DNA of 64,000 nucleotides from positions 124,001-188,000 of IMG/VR virus record IMGVR_UViG_3300025141_000020. One strand, 5' to 3'. The position numbers and the translations under genes were made by a program. Numbering within the stretch: the first letter of the stretch is position 1; every line of letters starts with the position of its first letter. Shown piece by piece: positions 18,284-64,000 of the stretch. Under the pieces are notes generated by a model. The model was not told where the DNA came from. It saw only the letters and a program-made list of their open reading frames with translations, and did not search any database.

Positions 18284-20308
18284 ATGTCTATACACAGGTC
18301 ATATTTCAGTAAAAATAATACAATAATATCTAATAGTGCTACTAACACTGGTAGAAATCCCGTAACTCAATTATTTTATGGTAGAAATAGTTCACGATGC
18401 AAATTTACTGGATATAGTGGTGATACTTGTAATGATAAAACTGGATTCACTAAAACAGCTATTCATGGTTATAGTAGATTTATTTTTGATTTGGATTTAT
18501 CTGACTTAAGAACTAAATATACCAATTGTTGTATGCCTTTAACTTCTTGTACATATACTGGTGTATATGATGAGGCGGCGACCTTTAATTTTACATTTAC
18601 ATCTACAGGAGATACCATTAATTATATGAGTTTAGTTGACTCTGTTGGTTTAACTGTTAGTTATGTTAACATTTCTGCTAACACCGCCACTACTATTAAT
18701 GGTTCACACATTACTGATGGTGGTGGTAACCTATATACACAATTTATATATAATATAGGTACTACGTTATCAAATCAAGCTACAAATTTTTGTTTAGCTG
18801 TTAATGGTGTTAGTGGACATAATGGTAGTATTTTATGTACGTCTGATGGTGCTAATGTTACTTTAACACAAGCAGGTTTAGGTGCTTCAGGAAATACTCC
18901 TGTGTATCCTGGAAATCTTAGTAATTTAAGTGTTAATACTGGTAATTTTCAACTTATCTCAGATATAGTATTTAGTGCGACAACAAATCCTTGTTCTAAC
19001 GAATTTTGTGGTGGAGGGATAGGTACGGGCTTTGATACTTGTGATGGACAACCCTATTATTCAATAACTTACAACCCAGACGTTAAACACACTTTACGTA
19101 TGACAAATACGTCTAGTTTTGATGACCAATTGATAAATGGTAAGATTTTAGTTAATGATACTAGAAGAGCTACATCATTTACTCTGATGTTATATAAAGT
19201 GCCTACTTCAAAAACTTCATTATGGGATGAAGGTGTTGGGTATGACTATGAAGTACCTGCTGTTTCTCTTGAACCTGAGTATAACCTCACACAATCTAAT
19301 AGACCTAGTAATTGGATTAATAGTACAACTCTTTCGACTTGGCCTAACCCAGGAACTTATAATAACTTACTTCCCTCTTCTTACACTGTTTTAGCCACCC
19401 AAAGTTTTGATGCTGGTAATGAAGACATAGCTTTTAGTAGTATAGCTTTAAATAATGAAATTGGTAGTCAGTTAGCATCACCACAAACTGGTGTTACCTA
19501 TGGTATAGCTTTTTTACCACAATTTGAATTATTATCTGGTTTAACAGAAGCTTATTCTGTTGGTTTCTTTTCTAGGCACACCCAAACATATTTTGAGCCT
19601 TTCTTGGAAACTTCTTTTAATGATTATATAAATGATAGTAGGAACCACTTTGAGGTTGGGTGTGAAAATAGGTTATTTTTATACGCTTATGACTGCAATG
19701 GTGACCCTATGTGTTTCACACAGGACCCTGTGGTTTATATTAGAGATTGTAATGATATTGTAACTTCTACTATAACCGCTTCTACATTAACGTGTGGTGC
19801 TTACTACGTAGATTATACGATATTACCACCGTTACCACAGACGCCGCCTGTTCAATACACAGACGAATGGTCTAACCTTTTTGTGGGAGGCATATCACAA
19901 CCAAATATAACTAACGAGTTTATAATTCACACTAACGGTTATACTATAGGCACTACTGTTGTGAAACCAAAGATATTTGGTTATTCTGTTTCTGGTATTA
20001 AGAACGATGAAAAGATTAAAGCTGGTGATACTAGAAAAATATTTGTCTCTACTAGGGTTCCTTATACGGTAAATCAAGAAGTGTTAGTGGATAATATACA
20101 ATATAGGATATATGTTAAACAGGGTACTACTGAGGTGAGTGTTATTCCTTGGTCTAAAATAAACAAAACTTTTACTGATAATTACTTCTTATTAGATACT
20201 TCCTGGATGATACCTAACGAATATTACCTAGATATAAAAGCAACTTCTAATCAACAAGTAGATACTTATAGTAAAGTGATAAAATTTCAAATAACTAACC
20301 AATTATGA
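18284..20308 (+). CDS. Putative virion structural protein (Thr/Ser/Gly/Cys-rich, beta-rich)
   Basis: Late motif at 18261; composition typical of baseplate/appendage proteins; 15 Cys. Confidence 0.55.
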   Translation: MSIHRSYFSKNNTIISNSATNTGRNPVTQLFYGRNSSRCKFTGYSGDTCNDKTGFTKTAIHGYSRFIFDLDLSDLRTKYTNCCMPLTSCTYTGVYDEAATFNFTFTSTGDTINYMSLVDSVGLTVSYVNISANTATTINGSHITDGGGNLYTQFIYNIGTTLSNQATNFCLAVNGVSGHNGSILCTSDGANVTLTQAGLGASGNTPVYPGNLSNLSVNTGNFQLISDIVFSATTNPCSNEFCGGGIGTGFDTCDGQPYYSITYNPDVKHTLRMTNTSSFDDQLINGKILVNDTRRATSFTLMLYKVPTSKTSLWDEGVGYDYEVPAVSLEPEYNLTQSNRPSNWINSTTLSTWPNPGTYNNLLPSSYTVLATQSFDAGNEDIAFSSIALNNEIGSQLASPQTGVTYGIAFLPQFELLSGLTEAYSVGFFSRHTQTYFEPFLETSFNDYINDSRNHFEVGCENRLFLYAYDCNGDPMCFTQDPVVYIRDCNDIVTSTITASTLTCGAYYVDYTILPPLPQTPPVQYTDEWSNLFVGGISQPNITNEFIIHTNGYTIGTTVVKPKIFGYSVSGIKNDEKIKAGDTRKIFVSTRVPYTVNQEVLVDNIQYRIYVKQGTTEVSVIPWSKINKTFTDNYFLLDTSWMIPNEYYLDIKATSNQQVDTYSKVIKFQITNQL

Positions 20309-20766
20309 AAAATATAAAAATAACTGAAAATGAATTAATCTCTCTTATAGAGAAAGTGGTTAATGAAAATCTAGGCTCAACACCATCATTAAGTGCTCAT
20401 GGAGGTGGTTTTGCAAATTTAGGAATGGCAAAACCAACTGATAAGTATAAAGACCTATATGAAGATGATGATATAGAAACTGAAGTAGATGAAGACTACG
20501 ACCAAGACCCTGAAGCTGAAAAATCAGCTGATATTACAGTAACAACACAACCTGGTTCAGATGATGAGGATGCGTGGATGGAAAGTATTGTTGATAGATT
20601 AAAAAGTAAACTAACCGAGGGTAAATGTCCTAAAAGTGGGTGTGTAACTAAACGTGGTAATAAATGGAGAGTCATTAGTAATAAAACTGGAAAACTGTGG
20701 GATGCTGAATATGATAGTAAAGCTGATGCGGAGTCGGGTTTAGAGGCTTATCACGCAAATCAATAA
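20305..20766 (+). CDS. Acidic putative capsid-internal protein with a small basic C-terminal module
   Basis: Leader MKNIKITENELISLIEKVVNE; acidic linker; LTE followed by GKCPKSGCVTKRGNKWRVISNKTGK... Confidence 0.55.
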   Translation: MKNIKITENELISLIEKVVNENLGSTPSLSAHGGGFANLGMAKPTDKYKDLYEDDDIETEVDEDYDQDPEAEKSADITVTTQPGSDDEDAWMESIVDRLKSKLTEGKCPKSGCVTKRGNKWRVISNKTGKLWDAEYDSKADAESGLEAYHANQ

Positions 20767-20809
20767 TAGAAAATATATATAATAAATAAAACCTAAAAAA
20801 TTAAAAATT

Positions 20810-20875
20810 ATGAAATGTGATTGTCAAATATGTAAGTGTGGTACGACATGTGACTGTACTTGTTGCGACTGTTAA
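20810..20875 (+). CDS. 21-aa Cys-rich metallothionein-like peptide MKCDCQICKCGTTCDCTCCDC
   Basis: Translated by hand: ATG 20810, TAA 20873-75, 9 Cys of 21 aa. A-rich leader like neighbouring genes; terminator follows. Below the ORF-track length cutoff. Confidence 0.75.
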   Translation: MKCDCQICKCGTTCDCTCCDC

Positions 20876-20903
20876 ATAACAGTTAATTAAAAAATAAAGA
20901 TAT

Positions 20904-20932
20904 AAAAAAACCACTTATTAGGTGGTTTTTTT
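20904..20932. terminator. Bidirectional rho-independent terminator
   Basis: AAAAAAACCAC-TTATTAG-GTGGTTTTTTT between convergent genes. Confidence 0.8.
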
Positions 20933-20936
20933 GTTT

Positions 20937-21242: not shown

Positions 21243-21253
21243 AATATTTGTTT

Positions 21254-21841
21254 TTAAACTTTTGAAGCTGTTACATTGTCACCAATATAAAACTGATTAC
21301 TTCCTTCTAGTCCTTGCCACATTGCCTGACGTACATCTGTTGCTTCATCAAAAACAACTTTAATTTTTAACGTATAGTAATTTGGGTAGGATATGTATAA
21401 CCCATTTTGTGCCATCTCCTCTTCATCTAATAATGCTCTTGCTACATTTGTTTTAACCGTTCCAGCTTCCGACTTTAGTATCATCGCTACATTACCTTCA
21501 GTTATATATGCATCATCAACTGGTAAGTCATAACCTCCAGCCTCAAGACTATAATAATTAGTTTTATGTCTTCCACCTACTGTACCTGTTATTTTTAAAT
21601 TCTTTGAGCTGGTATCGTAAACAAATAAATCTCTAGGTAGTCCATTCAGTAAGTTACCACCTAGGTTTCTCTCTACACCTGCTTCCGGGTCCGCCATTAC
21701 GTCTACATCGATTTCTATTTCTGGTTTTCTGTCCTCAACTTCAGTTAATACTGATGTAATTCGGTTATCTTTAGACTCTACTAAATGTAGCCCTCTAATC
21801 CTGTTCTTTTCTTCTTCTGTTAAACTAAATATATTTTTCAT
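21254..21841 (-). CDS. Hypothetical late protein with putative capsid-targeting leader
   Basis: MKNIFSLTEEEKNRIRGLHLVE...VLTE; late motif at 21855. Confidence 0.6.
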   Translation of the reverse strand: MKNIFSLTEEEKNRIRGLHLVESKDNRITSVLTEVEDRKPEIEIDVDVMADPEAGVERNLGGNLLNGLPRDLFVYDTSSKNLKITGTVGGRHKTNYYSLEAGGYDLPVDDAYITEGNVAMILKSEAGTVKTNVARALLDEEEMAQNGLYISYPNYYTLKIKVVFDEATDVRQAMWQGLEGSNQFYIGDNVTASKV

Positions 21842-21889
21842 AATATGGTTTATTTATAAATATCTAGTAGCAATAAAAAGGTTAATATG

Positions 21890-21921: not shown

Positions 21922-21961
21922 TAGTACAATTATCGGAAGTTTAATTATAAAATCAAAAAAA

Positions 21962-23400: not shown

Positions 23401-25197
23401 CTATCTAAGTTCTCTAACATCAAACGTTCTAACTCCGTCAACAGTGATTCTTCCGTAGAATCTATTGTTCACCATTTTCTTAGCGTATCTAGTCATGATA
23501 CCTTTGATTGGTGTAAAGTTGAATGGGTTATACATTGTAGGAGTTAACTGTAATGGTACATACGGTGCGTAAACGTACCCAGTATCCAATAAAGATGTTC
23601 CTTTATGTCCAATTAACACTTGGTTAGCTGGGAAGTAAGGGTCTCTATATACAGTAAATCTTCCTGATAATGTTCCAATTTTCTCAATACCCATATTGTA
23701 TTGGTCTTGGTCCGCTGCTGCGTTAGAAACGTGGAAGTATTCCAAGTCATCAAATATCGCAGAAACTTCAGAAGAACATACAATCCAGTTAGCCCCACCT
23801 CTTAAAGTAGACTTGTGGATTTGAGCTGAAATTTGGTTAACCGCTGTGATTAATGTTTGGTTCCAGTCTTTTTGAGTATATGGAGCTTGACCAGCTGAGA
23901 ATCTCTTCCAACCGTTGTAGTCCCATCTTAAATCCCAAGCTGCACCTTTTCTAAGGTCTCTTAAGATTTCTCTATCAATCTCTGCAGCAACTTCTTCAGA
24001 TAATAAAGCTGTTAATTCAGCTTCAGCATCTATGTTGTGGAATGCAGAAACGTCTTGTGCAAGTTCTGGTGACCATTGAGCTCTTAATTTTCTTTCACTT
24101 ACAGAAACTGTAACACCTTGAAGGTCGAAAGAAACTTCTCCCATATCTTCTTCAAATTCTAATGTAGCGTATTGTCTCCATTCTGCATTGAACTCAAAGT
24201 TTGCACCAGTTCCAGTCATACCAACATAACCATCAACTGAAGTACAACTAATACAAGCTGGACAAGAAGTATCAACCTCTAAATAGATATCTCCATTTGC
24301 GTCACACGTATCAGCTCTATCTACAATACCAAAACCGTATTTCTGTGTAACAACACGGAATAGGATTGGTGTTTGTGTTCCATACCCTAACGTTGAAGCT
24401 GCAATCTGATTACTTGTAGTTGCCGTAACAGAGTCACAACAAGATAAAATGTTAGCTGTAGTTAATTGTAATGAAGATAAGAAATCTTCTGTATCTTGCT
24501 CATTTCCATCAGGCCCAGTTAAAGTACCAACACCTGTTTGTGAGAAACCAGATAACTTAACAATAACACCTCTAGTACAAACTGTTACATCTCTTTGACC
24601 ATCACTTAATGCTGGTGGAACTGCTCCATTCCAGATAACCTCTACAGTACCTGCCGTTACGTTAGTGTATTTACCTCTAGAATAATCATAAGTACCATTA
24701 TCCATTTCTTGTGGTGAATTACCTGCATAGTAAGCGTCATATAGATTTCCTGTCGCTGCTGATACTGGATTAGCGTTGTTTGGATTTCCTGTTGACCCCA
24801 TTGGTGCTCCGTGAGTACCTGTACCAGGAGGTCCTACCTCTGTTCCTGCTACTACAGTTCTAGGTGTAATTTTAGGTACGAAGTAGAACAATTTACCAAT
24901 TGGTAAGTTCATAGCTTGTACAGAAACGATATCGTTAGCTAACAATTTCGAGAATACTCTTCTAATGATTGGAAATACAACCGTTTCGAAGGACCCTGAA
25001 TCACCAGCCGTCGTTGCTTCGTTTATTAAATTTGTTGCTTGGTTTTCATATAACTGTGCAACATTTTCTTTGACATGCCCTTTAAGTCCATCTAAGAACC
25101 CAAGACCATCCCATTTTTTTAAGGTATCTTCCTTGATAACTTTAAGGTGTTTTAAACCTATGTTACCAACCATACCTGATTCTAATAGTGCTCCCAT
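23401..25197 (-). CDS. gp23: Major capsid protein, T4 gp23-like, with an enlarged Cys-rich insertion
   Basis: VSVQAMNLPIGKLFY, RKLRAQWSPELAQDV, HNIDAEAEL, EIDREI, YAPYVPL, GIMTRY. Confidence 0.97.
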   Translation of the reverse strand: MGALLESGMVGNIGLKHLKVIKEDTLKKWDGLGFLDGLKGHVKENVAQLYENQATNLINEATTAGDSGSFETVVFPIIRRVFSKLLANDIVSVQAMNLPIGKLFYFVPKITPRTVVAGTEVGPPGTGTHGAPMGSTGNPNNANPVSAATGNLYDAYYAGNSPQEMDNGTYDYSRGKYTNVTAGTVEVIWNGAVPPALSDGQRDVTVCTRGVIVKLSGFSQTGVGTLTGPDGNEQDTEDFLSSLQLTTANILSCCDSVTATTSNQIAASTLGYGTQTPILFRVVTQKYGFGIVDRADTCDANGDIYLEVDTSCPACISCTSVDGYVGMTGTGANFEFNAEWRQYATLEFEEDMGEVSFDLQGVTVSVSERKLRAQWSPELAQDVSAFHNIDAEAELTALLSEEVAAEIDREILRDLRKGAAWDLRWDYNGWKRFSAGQAPYTQKDWNQTLITAVNQISAQIHKSTLRGGANWIVCSSEVSAIFDDLEYFHVSNAAADQDQYNMGIEKIGTLSGRFTVYRDPYFPANQVLIGHKGTSLLDTGYVYAPYVPLQLTPTMYNPFNFTPIKGIMTRYAKKMVNNRFYGRITVDGVRTFDVRELR

Positions 25198-25231: not shown

Positions 25232-26758
25232 TTATAATTTAGACATTAAGTCTTTCATTCTACTAAATTGAGGGTTTTCATATACTTTTGATTCCAAAAG
25301 TTTTCCGCCACTCCCACTAGTAGATGATTTAGTAATTTTTCTTTCAACAGCTTCAGAAATAGTTTTGGTTTTATCCTTAACTTCTTGTGAAAACTCTTGT
25401 CTGATTACCTTATACAACCCTTTAGATTCCTTCAATGTTTTAACATTGTCGAAACGCTTTAAGATGTTGATTTTCTCCTGCTTAGTAGTTGAATGTTCAG
25501 TGAATACTCTGGTAACGTAAGCAAGGTTAGAATTAAACACACCCACTTCATTCAATTTATCTTTAAAAGTAATTAATGCTTTTTTATACTCAACATTTTT
25601 TGATTTTAAAGAGTCTACTTCTTCTTTAAGAAGATTGTAGGACTTTCTTATACGACTTTCACCTAGGTTAGCTTTTCTTGGTCTACGAGATTCTCTTTGT
25701 TTCCCCCATTTACCTTGTCCAGCCATTCTAGAAAATGAACTATTCGGTCCAGCTTTTAATCTACTAGTTTCCTCTATTTCACCTTCCATTTCATAATCCT
25801 TATAATGCCCATCGACATCACCAGATTTATGACCCTTAGTTCTTTTGTACTCATCTTTCTTACTACCCCAAGTTTCTTCAACTTCACCTTCAACATCATC
25901 GCCTTCTCTATGTAACATACCTAAAGATTCGTCTTCTCTATCATCATAACCTTGTTCACCTCCAGATAATCGATGTAAAGCATCTGGTGTTTCACCATAA
26001 TGTTTTCTCATCCCTTCTCTTTCATGTCTTCTATCACCATAAGATTGTCTTTCGTCCATTTCCATTGAGTCGTCTGTTTCGTCTAACTCATCGTCATATG
26101 AAGATAAAGCTCTTTCTGATTCAGGAGCATCTACGCCCATTACACCAGTTTCGTCAAAATCTTCGTCCATCTCGATTTCATAGACTACTTCGTCAAGTCC
26201 TTCTTCGTTATCAGTAGTTTCGTCTTCAGTCTCAACCACTTCTTCTGTGTCATTAATGGATTCTTCTTCTCTCATGATTTTTGATTTTTTAGATTGTTCC
26301 AACTTAATTAGGTATTCAGTATCCGTATTTGTATCGGTCAAATCGATTTCATTATCGTCCTGTTGGATAATAATTCCGTCTTCGTCACCCATGGCTTTGA
26401 ATACTTTTAATACTTCAGCATCTGATGCTAATGTTAAATCTAGAGGTGGTAACTCTAGTGATACTTCGTCGTCTTCAGTATCGTCCTCCACATCAAGTCC
26501 TAAATCGAGGTCCATTGTCGGTTCTTCTAAATCCACCGTATCGGCTTCATCTTCCAAATCTTCAATATCTAAATCGATTTCAACTTCTTGTTCGTCTTCT
26601 TGCTCTTCTAGGTAATCATTTTCGCTTAATGATTCTTTTACTAATTCATGAATTTCTTCCTTCATAGTTGATGAAAGTATTTCTTTTGCATTAGACCTCA
26701 TAGTTTCTTCTAACTGTTCGGCCTCGAGCAACGCTTTTTCTAAGATTGTTTTACTCAC
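25232..26758 (-). CDS. Prohead core scaffold protein (gp22-like, long and acidic)
   Basis: Lies between protease and MCP; highly acidic; coiled-coil C-terminus (LNEVGVFNSNLAY); GTG start. Confidence 0.75.
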   Translation of the reverse strand: MSKTILEKALLEAEQLEETMRSNAKEILSSTMKEEIHELVKESLSENDYLEEQEDEQEVEIDLDIEDLEDEADTVDLEEPTMDLDLGLDVEDDTEDDEVSLELPPLDLTLASDAEVLKVFKAMGDEDGIIIQQDDNEIDLTDTNTDTEYLIKLEQSKKSKIMREEESINDTEEVVETEDETTDNEEGLDEVVYEIEMDEDFDETGVMGVDAPESERALSSYDDELDETDDSMEMDERQSYGDRRHEREGMRKHYGETPDALHRLSGGEQGYDDREDESLGMLHREGDDVEGEVEETWGSKKDEYKRTKGHKSGDVDGHYKDYEMEGEIEETSRLKAGPNSSFSRMAGQGKWGKQRESRRPRKANLGESRIRKSYNLLKEEVDSLKSKNVEYKKALITFKDKLNEVGVFNSNLAYVTRVFTEHSTTKQEKINILKRFDNVKTLKESKGLYKVIRQEFSQEVKDKTKTISEAVERKITKSSTSGSGGKLLESKVYENPQFSRMKDLMSKL

Positions 26759-26868: not shown

Positions 26869-27570
26869 TTACTGACTTAAGAAATTATTTAATCTATTCA
26901 TTAGATTAACTGACTTGTCAACATTTAGTGATTTGTTAGATTTTTTTGTTTCTACTACTGGTAATTCTTCGTCAACACTGTCAGGGGTTTCGTCCTCTTT
27001 AAATAAGTATGAACCTGGTGTAGATGGTGACGAAACTAAATCAAAACATACCAGTTCAAAGTCTTCCTGGACTTCGTTGTACTCACCATTTTTTGTTAGT
27101 GAGCCCACACCTCGAGATGAGATACCTAATGTAACACCTTGTCTTAGTAGATTAGCTGCCATATCACCAACACAAGAAATAACACCTTCTTTAAGATATC
27201 CTGGTGAAGTTAATAATTTTAATTTGCCTACTAATCTATTTCCGTCCCACCATGTCTCTGTTATTATATGCGAAGCTCGGTCTAAATCAATTAAAGATGA
27301 TTCTGGGTGGTTCAATTCTGATATAGCTCCCCCTTTCTTTATAACTTCTTGATATCTCTCATTTTCTCTTTTAAGAATACTTTCTGGATATACTCTACCA
27401 TTTCTGTTTGGTACCCCGTATTTTTGTAATATAGCATTCATATATATCTCCCCGTCGAAGTTATCTTTTGCCATCTCTTTAATTATGCCCTTATTATCTA
27501 TCGGTGAAATATAACCATCACTTTCGACTAATATGCCGTGACCTATCTCTCTAGCTTCTAAAATTTTCAT
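26869..27570 (-). CDS. gp21: Prohead core protease (gp21-like, U9/S80)
   Basis: NRNGRVYP, ELNHP, GISSRGVGS, FDLVSSPS. Confidence 0.93.
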   Translation of the reverse strand: MKILEAREIGHGILVESDGYISPIDNKGIIKEMAKDNFDGEIYMNAILQKYGVPNRNGRVYPESILKRENERYQEVIKKGGAISELNHPESSLIDLDRASHIITETWWDGNRLVGKLKLLTSPGYLKEGVISCVGDMAANLLRQGVTLGISSRGVGSLTKNGEYNEVQEDFELVCFDLVSSPSTPGSYLFKEDETPDSVDEELPVVETKKSNKSLNVDKSVNLMNRLNNFLSQ

Positions 27571-28119: not shown

Positions 28120-28866
28120 TTAGTTCAAGTCCTCTAAGAAGCCCCTAACCCTAATGTAGTTAGTTTTGGAGCTTGTTAATGTGTTAATTTCGTTCTTGGT
28201 TTCGACTAATTTAGCGGAAATATTGTCGTCTTTTGAATCGGATAGAAGTTTGTTTAATGTGGTAATTGCTGTATCTTTTACATTATTAAATTCTTTTATT
28301 ATACTATCTTCAGTCATTAATAATGTATTTTTAAGGATGCCTTTTTCCGATTCAGTTAATTTACCACCAAATTCCTTTTCATAATTTTTAGAAATTACGT
28401 GTGCCAACACCTTTGGTGTTATGGTCTTCTTTATTCTCTGTTTGGTGTTTTTCTGAATCATGGCCTCAGATAAGAATTTTTTTGATTTTACATTATCCTC
28501 TAACCTTTTTACACTATTATTAAATATTAAGCTGTCTATCTCTTCGTAAATTTTATTGGTTGTGTTGGTGCATAAGTCTTTTCTATCACCGATAATTTTA
28601 TCTAGTACGTTTTTAACCTTAGTTAATTCTTTTTTATTTCTTTTAAGGTGTCCTAAAGCTTCAGATATATAGACTCTACTATCCTCGATAGTCTCAAATC
28701 TTTTACTTTCTATTTCATTGTATAGGGTAAAGAATTCTCTAAGTGGTTTGGAAAATTTCATAGCTCCCATAATTACAGAAAGATTTTTTTTAAAATCTTC
28801 TTTATCTCCATAAGAGTTTTCTAAAATATTGTCTAAATTTTGTTTGTATTTGGCAAATCCTTTCAT
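28120..28866 (-). CDS. Hypothetical helical protein in the head module
   Basis: Late motif at 28881; ORF between portal and protease. Confidence 0.65.
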   Translation of the reverse strand: MKGFAKYKQNLDNILENSYGDKEDFKKNLSVIMGAMKFSKPLREFFTLYNEIESKRFETIEDSRVYISEALGHLKRNKKELTKVKNVLDKIIGDRKDLCTNTTNKIYEEIDSLIFNNSVKRLEDNVKSKKFLSEAMIQKNTKQRIKKTITPKVLAHVISKNYEKEFGGKLTESEKGILKNTLLMTEDSIIKEFNNVKDTAITTLNKLLSDSKDDNISAKLVETKNEINTLTSSKTNYIRVRGFLEDLN

Positions 28867-44800: not shown

Positions 44801-44832
44801 CTTGGTGGTGTCATTTATTTTTCTTATCTTTG
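44801..44832 (+). promoter_or_regulatory. Bacteroidota-type promoter, 4 nt from ATG (leaderless)
   Basis: CTTG(44801)-N20-TATCTTTG(44825)-TAGT-ATG(44837). Confidence 0.75.
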
Positions 44833-44836
44833 TAGT

Positions 44837-52117: not shown

Positions 52118-52144
52118 ATCTATACTATATAAATATAAATACCG

Positions 52145-52912: not shown

Positions 52913-52946
52913 CTTTGTTTTTATTATAAATATAACCTAATATTTA

Positions 52947-55430: not shown

Positions 55431-55739
55431 TTAACTAATGTAATATTTTAATTTTTCTTCGTATAAGTATCCTGGTTGTACTCCCTGCATAGATTCTTGC
55501 ACTTCACCATTTTTGATTATCGTTACGTTTGGAATCCCTCTTATACCATATCTTGCGGCTAATGATTGCATTTTATCAACATTAACTTTTAATATGTTAT
55601 TTGGGTATTGTTCTTTTAATTTATCTATTGTTGGTGTTAACATCCTACATGGCCCACACCATGGAGCCCAGAAATCTACTAACACAACTTCTTCACTTTT
55701 TAGTTTTTGGTCAAAAACCTGTTCACTAATTATATCCAT
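55431..55739 (-). CDS. trxA: Thioredoxin
   Basis: VLVDFWAPWCGPCRML, KVNVD, YGIRGIP. Confidence 0.97.
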   Translation of the reverse strand: MDIISEQVFDQKLKSEEVVLVDFWAPWCGPCRMLTPTIDKLKEQYPNNILKVNVDKMQSLAARYGIRGIPNVTIIKNGEVQESMQGVQPGYLYEEKLKYYIS

Positions 55740-55921: not shown

Positions 55922-56398
55922 ATGAAAAAATTAACCACAATATTATTATTACTCCTTTCCATAATTTCTTATGGACAAAATAATGTAGATATGCAAGCGT
56001 TTAATAAAATAAATGAATATCGTATATCCAATGGGGTGTCTGCTATTGTCCTTGACAGTACTATATGGAAAGGGGTGAATTATCATAGTAACTATCTAAT
56101 AGATAATGGTTATCCGTATAATTACCCATTAGATAATCCTCATGATGAACTGATTTTAGCTCGTCCTTCTGACAGATTATTTCAATATAATTTCGTTATG
56201 AATGGAGTTATTAGAGAGTGTATTACGGTATTTACCTGTGTTCCGGATATGGAATTAACAACGGATTGGGTTATTAAGAACTTTGATAAGTCCACTCCTC
56301 ACAAAGAAGCTGTTTTAGACCCTAGGGTAATTAGGGGTGCAATTTCCTTAACTTTTTCTGGTGATTTATGTTATGCTACATTAATTGTAGCAGAATAA
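55922..56398 (+). CDS. Secreted CAP (SCP/CRISP) domain protein, paralog 1
   Basis: Signal peptide ...SYG-Q; INEYRISNG, HSNY, H....RL, E, STPHKEAVL. Confidence 0.75.
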   Translation: MKKLTTILLLLLSIISYGQNNVDMQAFNKINEYRISNGVSAIVLDSTIWKGVNYHSNYLIDNGYPYNYPLDNPHDELILARPSDRLFQYNFVMNGVIRECITVFTCVPDMELTTDWVIKNFDKSTPHKEAVLDPRVIRGAISLTFSGDLCYATLIVAE

Positions 56399-56401: not shown

Positions 56402-57988
56402 CTATTTAGCAGCTGTTTTAGTAGTAATAGGGATACCACATTTATTTAATGTTAATAGTTTTGTGTTGGCTAAATCCCCTCTTTTCATTTTAATAGTAGG
56501 TTGTCCATCATAAACTTCCCCATTATAATTTTCTATAGTAACCCATGGAACATCACTATGACTACCCGAAAACCCTAAATTTAAATTTACATCCCCGTAA
56601 AATGCACAAGTATTATTAAAATTCGGAGGGGCAAACCCGGAAGGAGCGGGTGATACACCAAAACAAGGAGGTACTGATTCACCGGCGGACCCTACTTTTT
56701 TCATTACGACTAAAGCTTGCATTGAAAGTATTATCTCGTCCTCTGTTTCTGCCATTATTTGTGTAGCTTGTTCTGGGGTAACAGTAAATGTTACAGCTCT
56801 ACTACCACCAAATTTACCATCATCTATACCGTCCCTATCTCTTGCGGCATATGTTGAAGCTAACATTTGTCTTGGTTTTAGGTCAAACTGATTTCTCCAA
56901 TCAGGTATTTCTCCAATCATTTTTTCTCCCTCTTCATTAGTAAACTCCATAGGTTCTTGTGGACCATAACGTATTGCCTTTCTTAACATTTTTCCTATGT
57001 CACTTTTCTTTAATACATATCCATTCTTGAGTTCAGTTCCAACATCATTTGCTGTTACGTATGCCGCAGGAAGGTCATAATATGGTATGGAATTAGCTGC
57101 TTCAGGGGTAAATACATCTAAAGCCCCATTATTTAGGTTTGCTATTCCTAAACTAACACCATTCATTTTAACATCAAAAATTGCTTCATCACAAAAATGA
57201 TTATGTTGTCCTTTATTGGTATAGTATCCGATAGTACATTTTAGGTGTACTAAGCAGTCTTCTTCAACTTCATAGATTTTTTCAATAAAAGAGAATACTA
57301 AAGTGATTATTAAAGCTTGTCCTTTTTTAGGTGCTTTAGAGTCTTCATTGTTATCATCTGTAGCTCCTCCAGTATCAATAATAAAACCTTCTGGATTTGT
57401 AGATAATTTACTAACATCTATTTTTTCCTCTTTAAACAATGGTATTATTGCCTCGATAAATCTCTTAGCTCTCCTAGTAGCTAAATCTTTGTTAGCTTCT
57501 ATATTTTCACTTTTTTCGGTAAAAAAAGTTCCTGGGTATGAGCCTGCTTTTTTTAATTCTAACCATTTTTTCCAATCACCTTTATAACCATCTTTCGCCG
57601 CTAATTCTTCCCATCTTTCATCAGTAACCTCCACTAGTTTTTTATTGTCCTCACCTACGAAATCATTTCCTATTTCTGGTATCATAGGTTTCCTCCAGTA
57701 ATTACTTGCTCCCGCTTTAACGTCAATAGAGTCTAACTGTAATTTACCGGCTTTTAGTAGGGCTGCGTGTTGGGTGTTACTATTAATTTCTTTGATAATA
57801 CCTGCGACTACAGTGTTTATGAATGGTGAAGGGTCGTCCACACCTGTTGGGTAATTATATTCATACCTTAAGGGTATTTCTATATCTATATCGGAGACTA
57901 GTTTTCTTATATAAACCATTTCTTGTTCTCTAATAAGACCCATAATCTCTCTAGCTCTGTTAACCTCAGATAAAATATTCTTTTTCAT
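56402..57988 (-). CDS. Late protein with EINR-type leader and OmpA_C-like domain
   Basis: MKKNILSEVNRAREIMGLIREQ; late motif at 57993; AGASN...ANKDLATRRA. Confidence 0.55.
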   Translation of the reverse strand: MKKNILSEVNRAREIMGLIREQEMVYIRKLVSDIDIEIPLRYEYNYPTGVDDPSPFINTVVAGIIKEINSNTQHAALLKAGKLQLDSIDVKAGASNYWRKPMIPEIGNDFVGEDNKKLVEVTDERWEELAAKDGYKGDWKKWLELKKAGSYPGTFFTEKSENIEANKDLATRRAKRFIEAIIPLFKEEKIDVSKLSTNPEGFIIDTGGATDDNNEDSKAPKKGQALIITLVFSFIEKIYEVEEDCLVHLKCTIGYYTNKGQHNHFCDEAIFDVKMNGVSLGIANLNNGALDVFTPEAANSIPYYDLPAAYVTANDVGTELKNGYVLKKSDIGKMLRKAIRYGPQEPMEFTNEEGEKMIGEIPDWRNQFDLKPRQMLASTYAARDRDGIDDGKFGGSRAVTFTVTPEQATQIMAETEDEIILSMQALVVMKKVGSAGESVPPCFGVSPAPSGFAPPNFNNTCAFYGDVNLNLGFSGSHSDVPWVTIENYNGEVYDGQPTIKMKRGDLANTKLLTLNKCGIPITTKTAAK

Positions 57989-58003
57989 ATATTATAAATA
58001 GTA

Positions 58004-58110
58004 GAAACATTAGTTAAGTTATACCGTATAATATAATACAATTAACTTGGTCGTTTAACTTAAATTTATTATCTTTGTAGTATGAAAAAATTAATCACAG
58101 TATTATTATT
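58004..58110 (+). repeat. About 107-bp imperfect direct repeat (copy 2 at 58618-58724) containing the promoter and CAP signal-peptide start
   Basis: GAAACATTAGTTA...CAATTAACTTGGTCGTTTAACTTAAATT...ATGAAAAAATTA recurs at offset 614; promoters CTTG-N20-TATCTTTG (58046-58077) and CTTG-N20-TACCTTTA (58660-58691). Confidence 0.9.
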
Positions 58111-58609
58111 ATTCCTTTCCATATTTTCTTATGGTCAAACTAAGTTAGATTTACTTATTTTCGAAAAAGTGAATAACTATCGTACACAAAATGGTTTATC
58201 TCCGTGGGCATGGGATAATAGGGTTTTCGTGGTGGCTGAAAAACACAATAATTATCAACTAAGTGTAAGTGATATTTCACATGACGAATTAGTTGATGTT
58301 GTAGGTCATGAAGAAATTAATAGGTTAGCTCATCGTTTTGACGCTATTTTTACTAATTGGTTACGTTGTGGGGAAAATATTGCTGTTGTAAACACATCTG
58401 ATATGACATTAGAAAAAATTGCTAATACAACATTAGAAATGTGGATTGATTCCCCACCGCATAATAAAATACTTTTGTCTGCAACTAAATATTGTGGTGG
58501 AGCTATAAGCTCTCACCACAGTACAACCTGGTCACGTTCTAAATATGCTTCTCACAATAGTTGGGTGTACGTTACCTTAAATTTGTATGGTGGTTCTATA
58601 TATAACTAA
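58082..58609 (+). CDS. Secreted CAP-domain protein, paralog 2
   Basis: Signal peptide ...SYG-Q; VNNYRTQNG, HNNY, SHDE, GENIA, WIDSPPHNKIL. Confidence 0.85.
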   Translation: MKKLITVLLLFLSIFSYGQTKLDLLIFEKVNNYRTQNGLSPWAWDNRVFVVAEKHNNYQLSVSDISHDELVDVVGHEEINRLAHRFDAIFTNWLRCGENIAVVNTSDMTLEKIANTTLEMWIDSPPHNKILLSATKYCGGAISSHHSTTWSRSKYASHNSWVYVTLNLYGGSIYN

Positions 58610-58695: not shown

Positions 58696-59223
58696 ATGAA
58701 AAAATTACTCACAGTCTTATTAACTATTTTAACTTTCTGTTCATACGGACAACAACGTATTGTAGAAGCAGAAAAAATCATTTTTAGAATGGTAAACGAA
58801 TATAGAGTGTCTCAAGGGTTAGACGCTGTTGTATGGTCTGAAGACGCGTATAATGCAGCGTATCACCACTCATCTTATATGTCTAATAAAGGTGTCCCTT
58901 ATGCACACACTGAAACTGTTGATGTGGATGGTCATGAGGAGATAAGTAACCCTCAGATGAGAATAGCGAAGTATTGTAGCCCTTCTTCTTGGGGTACGGA
59001 ATGTATGGCGGGTCTTCCTTTATTATCGTGGACCGTAGAACCTTGGGATTTAGAGAAAGCGTGTCGTACAGTAGTAAATAATTGGATTAATTCTCCCGGA
59101 CACAAAAAAGCTATATTATATGATAAAGAAGGTAACGGTAACCTTAGTATTGGAGCTGTGAGCGTAATTAAGTTAAATTATTGTGAGAGTTCAATCCCGG
59201 TATTAGTCTTGGTGAACAAATAA
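58696..59223 (+). CDS. Secreted CAP-domain protein, paralog 3
   Basis: Signal peptide ...SYG-Q; VNEYRVSQG, HSSYM, HTE, E, WINSPGHKKAIL. Confidence 0.85.
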   Translation: MKKLLTVLLTILTFCSYGQQRIVEAEKIIFRMVNEYRVSQGLDAVVWSEDAYNAAYHHSSYMSNKGVPYAHTETVDVDGHEEISNPQMRIAKYCSPSSWGTECMAGLPLLSWTVEPWDLEKACRTVVNNWINSPGHKKAILYDKEGNGNLSIGAVSVIKLNYCESSIPVLVLVNK

Positions 59224-59233: not shown

Positions 59234-62071
59234 TTATGCTGGTTTGGTTAGTTGCTGTGAGGCATCCTTACCACATTTAACATTTAATCCCCACGCTGTA
59301 CCCCCTAATGGAGCTATTACCTGTAACCAAGCAGTATCTGTACCTTCAATTTTATTAAAGGTTATCTCACCATTAGGTCCTATCATACCCTCATCAAAAC
59401 CTAATGATTCCAGCTCTGCATTAAATTCTTTTGTTCCACCAATATTATTAGAAGCATACTTTCCTCCAGTACGTACATTCCACTCCCACTCCTTCTTAGA
59501 TATGTTAGCGGATTTTATTAATTGTTCTATTCTGTTTTTATTAACATTTATTTCATTTAGTATAATCTTAAGTTCATTTTCTAAATCTTGTACTACCTTC
59601 TTTTTTCTATTCGCGATTTCATTTTCCTTCACTGGTATCTCCTCCTTCATGGCCTCCAATTCATTTTTCTGGTTCTTTAACTGTATCGCTTGTAGTTTTT
59701 TCATTGTGATAAAGAACTCTTTAAGGTCATCTTTTTTGAATCCCGTTTGTTTTTTGTTCCTGTTATCCACCAATTTATTATAACCAGTGCTTTTCTGTAC
59801 TTTCGACTTATTGTCATATGGGTAAAGTTTGAAAAAATTGGTAAACCACTTTTCATCTAGTTCTCCCGCTGCTTTTAAATTATAATAAGCATTGCCAAGG
59901 TATTGAGCTCTCTTGTATTCTTCTTGAGTTTCATTGCCTCCATCTCTCTTACGTACCAACTTGTCTGACACATCATCATCTTTATGTACAAACCAGTAAA
60001 CATTAGGTACGTTTCTGTTAGGGTAATCCAGATAGTGGGTGATATACGAGCCCCATTTCTTGCCATATTTTTTATACTTTGAATCCCCGCCCAGACCTAT
60101 AGGAATACTAAAACCATACTTTTCTATTTTCTCATTAATCTTTTCTATTGATAACTTTAGGTTTTCCTCTTCCTGCTCTAATTTAGCTGTTATTTTTGCT
60201 GCTTGCTCTTCTGTAGTTGAATCTATAATTGCTTGTGCTTCCGCGTTTTCAGTTTCTAACTTTTTCACCTCCTCTTGTGCCTTTTTTAATTTTGGTTTGA
60301 CTAGGTCTAACTCTTCTTGAGACATTTTTTTAAATAAGTTTGAGACAAACCCTTCCTCCCCAGTATCTGGGTTTGAACTAACGTATTCTTTGTCATCATA
60401 AGTTAAAATAAACTTATCGGGAACAGTATACGCGTCAAACTGTAAAGTTATCTTTCCTACTCCAGCTCCTAAAGGTAATTCCATTCCATCACCTGGATAT
60501 ATTTTATACTCAGGACCTTGGGCTTGCCCTCCTTCTTCTGGTTTAAACTTTTTCTTACAAAAAGCTGGTAACGCTTCTAATACTTCTTGAATACCTGTGG
60601 CTTTAAAGGAGATGTTCATCTTTTGTGCTTTAGTATAATCATCGTGGTCAGCTCCTTTGTTTCGGTCCCAGGGTACAGTTCCTAAAGTAAGAATGGGTTT
60701 TGGGATAGTAACATTATCAATACCAGCCTGGGCTAATGCATTTTCTAAATATGTCTTTACTGCTTCTGTTCGTTTTTCCGCTAACCACATATTTCTTTCT
60801 TTTGCGTCTTTAGTCTCCCAGCCAGGCATTCCCATTTCTTTTGCTTTCTCATCTTGGATTGGTACAAGTGAGGCTCCACCTTCTAGTACAATCTCAAATG
60901 TTATGCCTTTTAAATCAGGAACACTAAAAAAAGTTACCATTCTTTTTGCTAGGTCTTCGACCGCGTCTAGAGACTTATCTTTTAGTTCATATACTGCCGA
61001 TGCGAATTTTTGTCCTATATTAATTGGCGGTAACTCGGTTTTTATTATATCAACTATTCTTTGCTTTTTACCGTTTCTAATAACAACATCACCCTTTTGG
61101 TCTTGTTGTTCCATAAGAGGTTTTAAACCCATTATTTCACGTACTCTATTAATTTCATTTAAATAGTGACTTTCTTCTACTTTGTATGCTTCATTTATTT
61201 CTACGTACTTTCCGTCTTTAACTAGATAAAGTATTTTATTCTTATTATTTCGGTAATATTTACCTTCCTCTGCGTTAGATACACTAGGTGTAGCTCCGAA
61301 TGGGTTTTCTTTAGTCCCTTTTTCTTCCTCTCCTGTACGTACATTTTCTCCTGCTCCTATTGTGTCATCTTTGTCAGACTCGTCTGAGTCAGACGTGGAT
61401 TTTACATTGGCCTTATCATACTTTTCTCTTTCCTCCTTGGATTGATTCTTTTTTCTCACTTCGTCACACCACTTCCATATATCCGCTTCGGTTTCTTTAT
61501 CATATGGATTTTTCGGGTTATCCCCAGGAGTGTACATATGGTTCGCGTCCTTTGCCCATGGACATACTTTATCTCCTCCCCTCAGTGCTAACTGCTCTTG
61601 TTTCAATTTAGATAGGGTGCTGCCTAAGTTTTGGTCTAGGTTATATTTCTCTCCTTCGTCAAAATTCCCTGAAAGAACTAATAAATCTACAAATTTTTCG
61701 GGTTTATTCTCATTATCAGAATCTTTAAATGCAATTTGTGTTAAAGTATCTAATTCATCTAGACCCATATATCTTGCCTCACCCGTCAAATACTTTATTA
61801 CACTGGATTCATCGACAAATATTCTATCCAACTTATTAACTAATTTCGCGAACATCCTAAGTTCATCGTCTCCAAATACTGGAGGTGTCTTCTTTCTATC
61901 ACTATCCTGTATCCAAGCACTAGTTTTTCTCCATTCCACACCAGATTTAAGTATGTTATAGATATCCTCTCTTCTTTTCTTGCCACCCCATAATCTGCCC
62001 CACCAATCTTCATTCAAAAGGCCCATTATTTCTTTGGTTCTATTAATTTCTGTTAAAATTTGTTTTTTCAT
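59234..62071 (-). CDS. 945-aa putative capsid-internal polyprotein with two EINR-type leaders and an OmpA_C-like domain
   Basis: N-terminal MKKQILTEINRTKEIMGLLNED; internal YLNEINRVREIMGLKPLMEQ; EGGAS...RNMWLAEKRTEAVKTYL; coiled coils. Confidence 0.6.
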   Translation of the reverse strand: MKKQILTEINRTKEIMGLLNEDWWGRLWGGKKRREDIYNILKSGVEWRKTSAWIQDSDRKKTPPVFGDDELRMFAKLVNKLDRIFVDESSVIKYLTGEARYMGLDELDTLTQIAFKDSDNENKPEKFVDLLVLSGNFDEGEKYNLDQNLGSTLSKLKQEQLALRGGDKVCPWAKDANHMYTPGDNPKNPYDKETEADIWKWCDEVRKKNQSKEEREKYDKANVKSTSDSDESDKDDTIGAGENVRTGEEEKGTKENPFGATPSVSNAEEGKYYRNNKNKILYLVKDGKYVEINEAYKVEESHYLNEINRVREIMGLKPLMEQQDQKGDVVIRNGKKQRIVDIIKTELPPINIGQKFASAVYELKDKSLDAVEDLAKRMVTFFSVPDLKGITFEIVLEGGASLVPIQDEKAKEMGMPGWETKDAKERNMWLAEKRTEAVKTYLENALAQAGIDNVTIPKPILTLGTVPWDRNKGADHDDYTKAQKMNISFKATGIQEVLEALPAFCKKKFKPEEGGQAQGPEYKIYPGDGMELPLGAGVGKITLQFDAYTVPDKFILTYDDKEYVSSNPDTGEEGFVSNLFKKMSQEELDLVKPKLKKAQEEVKKLETENAEAQAIIDSTTEEQAAKITAKLEQEEENLKLSIEKINEKIEKYGFSIPIGLGGDSKYKKYGKKWGSYITHYLDYPNRNVPNVYWFVHKDDDVSDKLVRKRDGGNETQEEYKRAQYLGNAYYNLKAAGELDEKWFTNFFKLYPYDNKSKVQKSTGYNKLVDNRNKKQTGFKKDDLKEFFITMKKLQAIQLKNQKNELEAMKEEIPVKENEIANRKKKVVQDLENELKIILNEINVNKNRIEQLIKSANISKKEWEWNVRTGGKYASNNIGGTKEFNAELESLGFDEGMIGPNGEITFNKIEGTDTAWLQVIAPLGGTAWGLNVKCGKDASQQLTKPA

Positions 62072-62081
62072 GGTTTTTATT

Positions 62082-62564
62082 TTAATTCCACATTACTGTT
62101 ATAGTTTTATCGTCTAAATCAACGTGTAGGTTTGTAGGTAATATAGTGTGGTATCTTTCATTATCTTTTTCATCATAATAATACCACATATCTGGGTCAT
62201 CACTTTTAAATCCACCCATGTCATCTACATTTAATTCAATTTCTTTTTCCACCTCTACCTTAGTGTAGTCTTCGTCATAAATCTCAATCGCTCCTTTTAT
62301 CACTACACTAGTCGTGTAAATGCTTATATCTTTAATACCCCAACTTCTTACGTCTAAATCAAACCTCCAATTTACAACACAATCTAGATATGATATGTCC
62401 ATATCTCGGTCTTTATATTCCGGGAAATAGTTTTGTAGTCCAGAAAAATCTATATCATCTACTTGTGTGCTAAATGAGTTTGGGTCGTCGTCCCATTGTT
62501 CTGTTATAACCTTATCTATTATTTTAACTAATTGGTCTTGTTTAAGTGATATTTTTTTTCTCAT
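62082..62564 (-). CDS. Acidic late protein with ISxxQL-type leader
   Basis: Likely start MRKKISLKQDQLVKIIDKVITEQ at 62564; late motif at 62602. Confidence 0.6.
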   Translation of the reverse strand: MRKKISLKQDQLVKIIDKVITEQWDDDPNSFSTQVDDIDFSGLQNYFPEYKDRDMDISYLDCVVNWRFDLDVRSWGIKDISIYTTSVVIKGAIEIYDEDYTKVEVEKEIELNVDDMGGFKSDDPDMWYYYDEKDNERYHTILPTNLHVDLDDKTITVMWN

Positions 62565-62655
62565 AGTATTAAAAGCTAATTTGCTGGCTTGCTTGCATAT
62601 AATAAATATAAGCATTATACTATAAATATTAATATATTTTTACTATAATTAATAT

Positions 62656-62997
62656 ATGAAAAATTTAATTCTTTGTATGGTAGTTTTTGTAATCGCTCAG
62701 ACTATGGTGTGGTTACAACTAAACGGACAATTTGTCTGGGAATCTTTTCGTAAATATGAATGGGTGTTAATTCTTTTCGGACTCCCAATTAGTTGGTTGT
62801 TTTTAGAAGCCACTAGACATGGTGTAACTGCTTTTGATGGGTTGCTTTGGCCCCAAAGATTTCTTGCTTTCGCTTGTGGAATTATTATTTTTAGTTTATT
62901 TACTTGGCTATTTAAAGGTGAAGGTATTAACACAAAAACAATGATTTCTCTTGGTTTGGCTAGTTGTTTAGTTTTAATACAAATTTTCTGGAAATAA
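62656..62997 (+). CDS. Small 4-TM membrane protein (SMR/DMT-like)
   Basis: 113 aa with four hydrophobic segments. Confidence 0.6.
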   Translation: MKNLILCMVVFVIAQTMVWLQLNGQFVWESFRKYEWVLILFGLPISWLFLEATRHGVTAFDGLLWPQRFLAFACGIIIFSLFTWLFKGEGINTKTMISLGLASCLVLIQIFWK

Positions 62998-63025
62998 ACT
63001 GTAACTACACTAGTATTTATATAAT

Positions 63026-64000
63026 ATGCAAACGACATTTAAAGACATATTATTAAAGGAAGATTATACAGGTAATATGATTACCGGAGAATTAAGTAAA
63101 AAACTCGATAATACCCTTTTTACCCTTATTCATGTACTTGGTGGGTTCACCACCTCAGACGTTATTAACTTTGCAAGAAACGCAAACTATAGAGAACGTA
63201 GACTATTAGATAAGATGGTTAATGACTTACCTTTATCGGATAGACCTTTTGATAAGGAGATGATTAAAAATTCTTCTAGATATCGAGCTTTAACGGTTTT
63301 TATTCAAGTTATAGGTGACTCTTCTAATGTTAATGAATCGTATGTAATTAATAGAGATTTACCGGAACATATAGATAATCAATTATATTTTCTATCACAC
63401 TATATAGGTGGATTTACCACAATGGATGTTGGTCGTTTTGTTAACAACTCTACTCCTAAACAAATTAAAAGACTTGGTCTATTACTTAATAGGATTCCTT
63501 CAGACCAATATGAATTAATTCCTTTAGCTGGAATGTACAAATCTATATATGATAGTCCAGACTATCAAAAACTAATATCTTTAATTCTAGGTACCTTAAC
63601 TGAAGATGTACAATATGACGCAGAGGGGTATCCCACCACAGACACTAACCCATATTTTACACAATACGTTACTCCTGAAATAAAAAAACAAATATTCGGT
63701 TATTGGGGCAAACATGGAATCTGTTATGATTGTTTAAAATATTTTGGTGTCGATGTGGAGGAGGAGGATATGGAAGGTTATACTGATTTTAGAAATATTA
63801 GTGATATTGTATACCCACTATTAGTTATGGAGTATGGTGGTGGTCTAGAAAGCTCTGAGTTTGCAAAAGCTCCGTGGAAATACACTAATGAGATGGGTTT
63901 TAATAATCTAAAGTTTAAAGTAGAACCTATTAGGTTTGACTACATGTTTGATGAATCTGAAAATTTTGGTGAGCATGGTTACGCTTGTTGGGATATTAGG
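63026..64000 (+). CDS. Partial late gene running off the window edge, not in ORF track
   Basis: TATTTATA at 63014, ATG 63026, open to the end (MQTTFKDILLKEDY...GYACWDIR); internal duplicated GGFTT module. Confidence 0.75.
   Translation, partial: MQTTFKDILLKEDYTGNMITGELSKKLDNTLFTLIHVLGGFTTSDVINFARNANYRERRLLDKMVNDLPLSDRPFDKEMIKNSSRYRALTVFIQVIGDSSNVNESYVINRDLPEHIDNQLYFLSHYIGGFTTMDVGRFVNNSTPKQIKRLGLLLNRIPSDQYELIPLAGMYKSIYDSPDYQKLISLILGTLTEDVQYDAEGYPTTDTNPYFTQYVTPEIKKQIFGYWGKHGICYDCLKYFGVDVEEEDMEGYTDFRNISDIVYPLLVMEYGGGLESSEFAKAPWKYTNEMGFNNLKFKVEPIRFDYMFDESENFGEHGYACWDIR

Follow-up and report, generated by a model that had tools for sequence, protein, structure and literature searches.

Short N-terminal leaders ending in an I/L-x-Glu site are candidate prohead-targeting propeptides in an uncultured T4-like phage

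In bacteriophage T4, the internal proteins and Alt carry a capsid-targeting sequence (CTS) that is removed by the gp21 protease (Mullaney & Black 1996, as reviewed in PMC9026906). The internal proteins are loaded through an N-terminal CTS of 10–19 residues, gp21 cuts after L/I-x-Glu, and reviewers of the T4 system have suggested that the CTS evolved as a way of packaging diverse proteins (PMC9026906). In the giant phages phiKZ, 201phi2-1 and SPN3US, a diverged homolog of gp21 cuts many of the head proteins after Glu, and the cargo includes ejection proteins; giant-phage paralogs can also share identical N-termini, which have been interpreted as CTS-like (PMC5694885). Here we describe three families of short leaders, Types A, B and C, found mainly at the N-termini of otherwise unrelated proteins in a 64-kb stretch of phage DNA (the window). 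The window belongs to the 210,568-bp IMG/VR contig IMGVR_UViG_3300025141_000020, and its position 1 corresponds to about contig position 124,001.

The leaders resemble the T4 CTS in being short, apparently N-terminal propeptides of unrelated proteins, in ending at an L/I-x-Glu site and in occurring with gp20-, gp21- and gp23-type head genes. They differ from it in comprising three interchangeable helix families, in having a helix and a cut site that are separate elements, in including an internal copy in a fusion protein, and in spanning hundreds of protein clusters across an uncultured clade that is known here from sequence alone. In the giant phages, the sites are S/A/G-x-E and the propeptides are mostly >100 residues long (PMC5694885). 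By contrast, P3 is I, L or V in the leaders described here, which span no more than 34 amino acids (aa), and the major capsid protein (MCP) and protease are much closer to those of T4 than to those of giant phages. We propose, with a probability of about 0.6, that the leaders are cleavable, T4-CTS-like prohead-targeting propeptides of three new, interchangeable families. The principle itself is already known from T4 (PMC9026906) and the giant phages (PMC5694885). What appears new is that there are three such families and that they are exchanged as modules, along with an internal copy retained where two genes were fused, a scale of hundreds of clusters within one clade, and bodies with OmpA-like domains. 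The literature searched held nothing relevant to these motifs or to capsid-targeting propeptides of Bacteroidetes or metagenomic phages, and no proteome of the clade turned up in it.

Nine leader copies in eight proteins

The leader families were defined de novo. Profiles built from their motifs, an approach suggested in an earlier sequence-only reading of this DNA, were run over all six frames of the window. These scans identified nine leader copies in eight proteins; in related loci, profile hits showed a bias towards N-termini. The Type A core, E-I-N-R-x-R-E-I-M-G-L, was found in five copies, one of them internal, with scores of 20.7–30.2 bits (at 51644, 52105, 57979, 62062 and 61168). The Type B core, K-I-x-L-T-E-x-x-L-x-x-I-V-K-x-V-x-x-E, occurred three times (21.1–27.5 bits; 20314, 52906 and 62555) and the Type C core, S/T-E-E-E-K/R-N-R-I-x-x-L-H, once (26.6 bits; 21829). 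The best background score of any leader profile in the window was 4.3 bits, more than 16 bits below the true copies, indicating that the Type A and B scores are not compositional noise. Each of the nine copies is followed by [ILV]-x-E.

Four minus-strand proteins begin with a Type A leader. The leader of the 528-aa protein (gene 56402–57988) comprises 21 aa (57926–57988; 30.2 bits) and ends in I-R-E↓Q, where the arrow marks the predicted cut. That of the 945-aa protein (gene 59234–62071) also comprises 21 aa (62009–62071; 29.3 bits) and ends in L-N-E↓D. The 790-aa protein (gene 49281–51653, with the start at MNKK) has a leader of 28 aa ending in I-T-E↓Q (51570–51653; 20.7 bits), and an acidic 150-aa protein (gene 51665–52117) has one of 24 aa ending in L-N-E↓D (52046–52117; 27.0 bits). 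A homolog of the latter in locus L098 likewise carries a Type A leader. The internal copy, which the sequence-only reading had missed, occupies residues 302–321 of the 945-aa protein (61109–61168; 29.6 bits) and ends in L-M-E↓Q at a fusion joint described below.

The Type B leaders belong to smaller proteins. On the plus strand, a 153-aa protein (gene 20305–20766) starts with a 21-aa leader ending in V-N-E↓N (20305–20367; 27.5 bits), which is kept in orthologs adjoining the MCP gene in loci L001–L003. On the minus strand, a 138-aa protein (gene 52496–52912), with orthologs in L088, L097 and L098, has a 20-aa leader ending in I-L-E↓Q (52853–52912; 21.1 bits), and a 160-aa protein (gene 62082–62564) has a 22-aa leader ending in I-T-E↓Q (62499–62564; 23.1 bits). 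The single Type C leader, of 22 aa, ends in L-V-E↓S and opens a 195-aa minus-strand protein (gene 21254–21841; leader 21776–21841), in which a second site, V-L-T-E↓V, lies twelve residues further on. The Type C family has at least 17 further N-terminal copies in related loci, besides those on swapped homologs discussed below.

The sequence-only reading had already placed Type A leaders at 51653, 52117, 57988 and 62071, where both the N-termini as read and the profile scan located them, and Type B leaders at 20305, 52912 and 62564, which were likewise found. The leader at 21841, taken for a Type A relative, is real and represents the separate Type C family. The general claim that unrelated late proteins share leaders ending in [ILV]-x-E holds, on firmer ground than first stated, but the accompanying gene list was too long, with five candidates at noise. 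Those at 36930, 43053, 33888 and 47292 scored ≤3 bits against all three profiles, and relatives of the first two keep their own conserved N-termini and never carry a swapped A, B or C leader. The candidate at 63026, also at noise level, falls in a minus-strand open reading frame (ORF) that is unlikely to be a gene, since a more convincing ORF for a membrane protein overlaps it on the plus strand. Instead of the 12 or more payloads that had been expected, the window encodes the eight proteins described above.

The leaders are 20–34 residues long, with a mode of 23–24, and form charged amphipathic helices with a mean hydrophobicity near 0. Two familiar kinds of leader were considered and rejected. 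A Sec, Tat or lipoprotein signal peptide would have a hydrophobic core of ≥10 residues after a basic N-region, and the leaders have none. A double-glycine leader of a bacteriocin or of a ribosomally synthesized and post-translationally modified peptide does not fit either. Such leaders end at a GG site, precede a short core peptide and occur in bacterial genomes together with a C39 transporter, whereas here there is no GG site, the bodies are 118–924 aa long and no genuine Type A match turned up in bacterial or archaeal genomes. Separately, a 1010-aa protein adjoining a Type A gene in a related locus (L123:1785–4817, plus strand) has a conserved-looking N-terminal helix, E-L-L-E-R-V-L-L-L-M-K-Y, followed further on by V-L-T-E↓Q; this helix may represent a fourth leader family.

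The genome has a GC content of 32% (30–35% across the window), and short N-termini rich in K, I and E are common in it. Recurrent N-termini might therefore reflect chance similarity in a Lys/Ile/Glu-rich proteome, or an RNA or translation-initiation element at the 5' ends of late genes. The gap of more than 16 bits to the best background argues against this, as do three further observations. The five Type A copies in the window differ at synonymous codon positions, which indicates that it is the protein, rather than the DNA or RNA, that is conserved. The internal copy has been kept even though the nearest start lies 300 codons away. Finally, when 1.84 billion representative proteins were searched with a 34-position profile confined to the Type A leader, 249 clusters were retrieved at E ≤ 1e-3, and almost every match began at residue 1. 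A chance or RNA-level explanation is effectively excluded.

Leader exchange and the Glu site

The profiles of Types A and C themselves exclude the [LIVM]-x-E site. Nevertheless, all 24 distinct Type A copies and all 23 distinct Type C copies were followed by the site, against a background of 0.28 per 18-residue window; because the Type A copies stand on at least 12 BLAST-unrelated body families, the probability of this arising by chance is ∼2e-7. Among the best 150 Type A clusters, the Glu site was present in 148 of 149, with I (74), L (67) or V (7) at P3, E at P1 and Q at P1' in 60%; leader length peaked at 23–24 residues. The 94 bodies of ≥100 aa in these clusters fell into at least 26 BLAST-unrelated groups. 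In the aligned Type A examples, M-G-L closes the helix, and a spacer of 0–9 residues, often containing Pro, separates it from I/L-x-E. As the spacer varies while the site is fixed, the site looks like a separate cleavage element. The junction Glu was invariant in three alignments, including those of the 528-aa and 945-aa families.

The most telling new finding is that homologs of the window proteins carry different leaders. The 74 homologs of the 528-aa protein begin with Type A (P0001–14 and P0048), Type B (most of P0015–74) or Type C (P0031 and P0035), and the Glu21-Gln22 junction is invariant in an alignment of 47 sequences although the leaders differ. Orthologs of the 945-aa protein begin with either Type A (P0077–81) or Type C (P0082–84). 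The 790-aa family (P0093–99) keeps the same start Met and the Type A leader, and the spacer before φ-x-E↓Q varies. In the swapped families, the body starts 0–4 residues after the Glu. Judged from these alignments, leaders A, B and C are interchangeable on homologous bodies across an invariant E-Q junction, and such natural swapping is consistent with the leaders being portable.

The internal copy can be traced to a gene fusion. Elsewhere, the C-terminal half of the 945-aa protein exists as a stand-alone protein of 519–523 aa that starts with a Type A (P0085) or B-like (P0086) leader, and its body begins at Q-Q-x-x-G-D-V-V, a stretch also present directly after the internal copy of the window protein. 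As the stand-alone halves start with a leader, the internal copy represents the retained N-terminus of the downstream partner. The Glu321-Gln322 junction is invariant in 10 orthologs, down to 41% identity.

These data bear on the possibility that the helices are not cut at all and act as docking or oligomerisation modules for another partner, such as the tail, the baseplate, a neck hub or Hsp70/ClpB, with the Glu serving as a helix cap or interface. Phage tail spikes are known to share N-terminal adaptors, an Hsp70 and a ClpB-like ATPase are encoded close by, and some Type B helices stand at C-termini with no Glu site after them. Docking alone would, however, account poorly for a Type A site that is kept in nearly every cluster despite a variable, often Pro-containing spacer, for the restriction of P3 to I, L and V, and for bodies that begin so close to the Glu in swapped families. 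The modules are also far shorter than tail-spike adaptors, and their genes cluster with head rather than tail genes. According to AlphaFold 2 (AF2) models of the 528-aa and 945-aa proteins, whose mean predicted local distance difference test (pLDDT) scores were 63 and 65, respectively, the leader helix does not pack on the body. In the former, an isolated leader helix at residues 2–15 is followed by a low-pLDDT linker at 16–20; in the latter, the N-terminal leader helix (residues 4–16) has a pLDDT of 33–36 and the helix of the internal copy falls in a low-confidence segment at 294–327. In these models the leader segments are presumably flexible. Overall, we consider uncleaved docking modules to be improbable.

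The chaperone genes themselves are a full-length Hsp70/DnaK (38878–40749, minus strand; Pfam HSP70, 6e-261) and a ClpB-like double-AAA+ protein (40993–43035, plus strand), which are divergently transcribed. This pair might handle the many helix-tagged late proteins.

Head genes and the bodies behind the leaders

The presumed processing enzyme is encoded in a T4-type head module on the minus strand of the window. The module includes a large terminase (TerL; 30772–32493) and a gp20-like portal (28892–30727). The gp21-family prohead serine protease (26869–27570) matched phrog_207 at 3.4e-46 and aligned with the T4 gp21 structure 5JBL at E = 5.5e-17, retaining the positions of the catalytic His (ELNHP) and Ser (SSRG). 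Its residues 12–16 form a conserved G-I-L-V/I-E site, recalling the N-terminal site discussed for T4 gp21 (PMC9026906). The gp23-like MCP (23401–25197) matched phrog_138 at 1.2e-65. Its predicted 60-aa propeptide (25018–25197) ends in L57-I58-N59-E60↓A61, so that the LINE↓A at residues 57–61 noted in the sequence-only reading is confirmed. This site is invariant in 49 distinct MCP relatives and is followed by a variable stretch; in an alignment, it and the mature N-terminus of T4 gp23* lie no more than about 16 residues apart.

Two small unannotated genes lie between the portal and protease genes. In this interval, at the position of gp67/gp68, a 248-aa protein is encoded (28120–28866) with a promoter-like motif upstream; it has a short N-terminal N-I-L-E↓N, and the I-L-E site is kept in close relatives only. 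Between the protease and MCP genes, an acidic protein of 508 aa (25232–26758) occupies the gp22 position. It had no family match, and its position makes it a candidate scaffold or core protein. At residues ∼25–47 it contains a conserved helix, A-K-x-I-L-x-S-T-M-K-E-E-I-x-E-L-V-K-E-S-L-x-E, whose end resembles the Type B tail. This likeness hints that the leaders may mimic or pair with the scaffold helix.

As judged from its genes, the phage is an uncultured T4-like phage of Bacteroidota; Bacteroidota-type −7 boxes (TAnnTTTG) at some genes suggest that the host belongs to the Bacteroidota. Among cultured phages, Flavobacterium phage immuto comes closest, but the MCP identity is only 37%, and a nucleotide search with the head module found no match among cultured phages. 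IMG/VR contains at least 598 MCP relatives, of which the 80 kept are 64–92% identical to that of the window.

We infer the following course of events. Late in infection, proteins would be made with a 20–34-residue N-terminal module consisting of an amphipathic helix of Type A, B or C, often a Pro-containing spacer, and I/L/V-x-Glu. The helix would bind a component of the assembling prohead core, and the protein would be enclosed as the gp23-like shell closes. The gp21-type protease would then cut after the Glu, as at the LINE↓A of the MCP, to free the mature body inside the head. In the 945-aa fusion, the internal leader would provide a second cut and thereby two bodies. Some bodies would probably be ejected with the DNA, the clearest candidates being two large OmpA-like proteins that lack a secretion signal.

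These two are the 528-aa and 945-aa proteins. The models suggest a fold like that of the OmpA, Pal and MotB peptidoglycan-binding domains in the 528-aa protein and in the C-terminal half of the 945-aa protein; the best Foldseek matches were 3td5 (E = 7.4e-4) and 5wtp (E = 1.9e-3), with a probability of 1.00. Dozens of family members followed these matches, with identities to the structural matches of only 12–19% and models of moderate confidence. The two bodies are homologous over the OmpA-like region (hhalign 98.4%). A true domain of this kind would be an α/β OmpA_C fold with a conserved helix that contains Arg; the bodies have an invariant Arg and Leu in a stretch of the N-x-x-L-A/S-x-x-R type, but no Pfam match. 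Neither protein has a signal peptide or membrane anchor, whereas neighbouring CAP proteins have ordinary signal peptides. Given this lack of a signal peptide, virion delivery would be the simplest route for the OmpA-like bodies to the cell wall. Of the payload kinds proposed in the sequence-only reading, an OmpA-like fold is therefore suggested by models of two bodies, but membership of the leader set has not been demonstrated for the zincin-like protein at 43053.

Among the other bodies, the 790-aa protein has six tandem copies of the 8-residue repeat E-A-I-E-K-A-E-R (residues ∼165–215) and two moderately hydrophobic segments. Its relatives vary in total length (770–782 aa), possibly through repeat copy number. 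In relatives, Type C proteins encoded just downstream of the MCP were also considered as gp24-like vertex proteins, an identity that would have linked a leader to a head protein known to be cleaved, and no such PHROGs match was found.

Alternatively, the leaders might target proteins to the prohead and be cut there while the bodies serve as auxiliary core or scaffold, to be degraded or expelled at maturation rather than injected. Core proteins of this kind exist in T4, where gp22, gp67 and gp68 are fragmented by gp21 (PMC9026906), and the small bodies of the window are very acidic, partly of low complexity and scaffold-like. The density of [LIV]-x-E in the 150-aa and 153-aa proteins, 3.3–3.9 per 100 aa, is also close to the 4.1 of the scaffold candidate; the protease has 3.9, the 248-aa protein 3.2 and most other proteins about 1–2. 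By contrast, the large bodies (507–924 aa) have an ordinary density of 1.4–2.0 per 100 aa and are folded, and OmpA-like folds make sense only outside the cytoplasm. Moreover, at least 26 unrelated body families are many for scaffolding. A purely scaffolding role for the bodies is thus unlikely, if slightly less so than uncleaved docking.

Returning to targeting propeptides that release cargo, a broader interpretation is that the leaders form a modular address system in this abundant clade. At least three helix tags with a protease release site, placed N-terminally, internally and occasionally C-terminally, would load dozens of unrelated proteins, including ejected peptidoglycan-binding cargo. 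We advance this interpretation tentatively, at slightly less than even odds.

Distribution, gene arrangement and implications

In the first set of related loci, the leaders were N-terminal in 23 of 24 (Type A), 35 of 42 (Type B) and 23 of 23 (Type C) distinct copies. In 189 further loci, fetched only by a Type B or C DNA pattern, the corresponding numbers were 141 of 152 for Type B and 64 of 66 for Type C. An MCP 63–96% identical to that of the window was encoded in 63 of these 189 loci; because these were retrieved by the leader patterns alone, the leaders are, on this sampling, a hallmark of this capsid clade and often adjoin its head genes. With strict back-translated DNA patterns, Type A was located in 20 stretches of IMG/VR, Type B in at least 120 and Type C in 73. 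A search of 185,579 bacterial and archaeal genomes with the pattern for Type A gave no genuine match: the single hit (L101) is a 36-codon ORF without a Met or a Glu site and is therefore attributed to chance. We consider the Type A system, as sampled by these searches, to be phage-intrinsic. Cluster look-up and contig context of the homologs added no names or functions.

Several observations weigh against the leaders being cleavable, T4-like propeptides. The I/L-x-E motif is short and the proteome is rich in I, L and E, and the specificity of the protease is presumed from T4. P1' is mostly Gln in the leaders and Ala in the MCP. The leaders are longer than the T4 CTS (20–34 versus 10–19 residues). 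All eight predicted mature bodies are acidic (pI 4.1–5.6), and many are large, whereas T4 internal proteins are small and basic; the small basic modules anticipated in the sequence-only reading did not materialize. Pfam and PHROGs searches with all eight leader proteins gave nothing above noise and no known virion protein. In immuto, all three leaders were absent from the 100 of 160 kb scanned, which included the whole structural region, and the best score was 6.6 bits. Finally, Type B sometimes stands at the extreme C-terminus, at times with no Glu site after it, which suggests that the role of the helix does not always require removal and leaves room for uncleaved docking.

Searches of cultured phages by tblastn were also negative: the 23–24-aa consensus leaders returned nothing even at E = 10, a search that is probably too insensitive, and the full Type B protein P0018 returned nothing.

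The C-terminal copies have parallels in other systems. Encapsulin cargo-loading peptides are short tags at either terminus that send unrelated cargo into an HK97-fold shell; their contact is with the shell protein itself, and no maturation protease cuts them off. Their sequences are unrelated to the leaders, and the use of either end recalls the C-terminal Type B copies as an analogy only. In T4, Alt is processed at both ends (PMC9026906), which parallels these copies. In many relatives, the gene directly downstream of that for the MCP encodes a basic, Cys-rich protein of ∼240 aa (L017:5149–5901, plus strand; also L012, L014, L018, L057 and L074), of which the window has no homolog. Its N-terminus, K-I-N-E↓A-T-x-S-S-S-G, is like the MCP cleavage region, and its extreme C-terminal end is a Type B helix, sometimes lacking a Glu site after it.

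The leader genes share a promoter-like motif with the head genes. Of 49 occurrences of TATTTAT[AT], 17 lie 8–45 nt upstream of gene starts (16 of 70 genes), against about 1 expected. The genes concerned include those of the protease, the portal, TerL and the 248-aa protein, as well as five of the eight leader genes; the remaining three are directly next genes in the same operons, so that all eight lie in motif-headed units. The earlier statement that most leader genes carry the motif is borne out. One copy (57993–58000, minus strand) lies 12 nt upstream of the 528-aa leader gene, and the other leader units have minus-strand copies at 21855–21862, 52128–52141, 52925–52932 and 62601–62608 and a plus-strand copy at 18261–18268. 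Because the motif precedes head genes and resembles the late promoter of T4, it is probably late. The genes for secreted CAP-domain proteins, the SprT-like protease and the GIY-YIG protein have host-type promoters and no leaders.

Pfam and PHROGs searches with the neighbours of the leader genes yielded nothing useful. The plus-strand interval 14109–20308 encodes three large proteins of 718, 598 and 674 aa, for which no Pfam or PHROG match was found. Their operons start with promoter-like motifs near 13715 and 18261, and an ATGA overlap couples translation of the third to that of the Type B gene that follows at 20305. Three paralogous small proteins with ordinary signal peptides are encoded on the plus strand at 55922–56398, 58082–58609 and 58696–59223, and two of them match the Pfam CAP domain. 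The genes at 58082–58609 and 58696–59223 have near-identical upstream regions with Bacteroidota-type −7 boxes and are interleaved with leader genes on the opposite strand.

Elsewhere in the window, the intervals 44198–45337 (plus strand), 38367–38804 and 55431–55739 (both minus strand) were recorded together for a GIY-YIG/T5orf172 protein and a SprT-like metalloprotease with host-type promoters, and for glutaredoxin-like and thioredoxin-like genes judged from their N-terminal motifs. A plus-strand gene block at 1101–9486 encodes proteins whose N-termini resemble sugar-nucleotide or glycosyltransferase enzymes, such as a GDP-mannose dehydratase-like start at 5630; immuto carries a similar annotated block.

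If the leaders act as we propose, a simple rule, namely a Type A, B or C helix and then I/L-x-Glu, would allow the proteins inside the heads of hundreds of uncultured phages from the sea and fresh water to be predicted, proteins that are otherwise unannotated. It would also make the non-DNA content of T4-type heads testable by metaproteomics, through semi-specific peptides that start after the predicted Glu. The compact tags would offer a means of loading foreign proteins into phage heads and, if the modular address system holds, a ready-made orthogonal packaging set. The OmpA-like bodies would constitute a new class of ejected proteins with wall-binding domains. Overall, the T4 capsid-targeting principle would have diversified in this clade into exchangeable tag families shuffled among cargo genes. 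On the more tentative address-system interpretation, no tailed phage would be known to load a larger natural repertoire of cargo.

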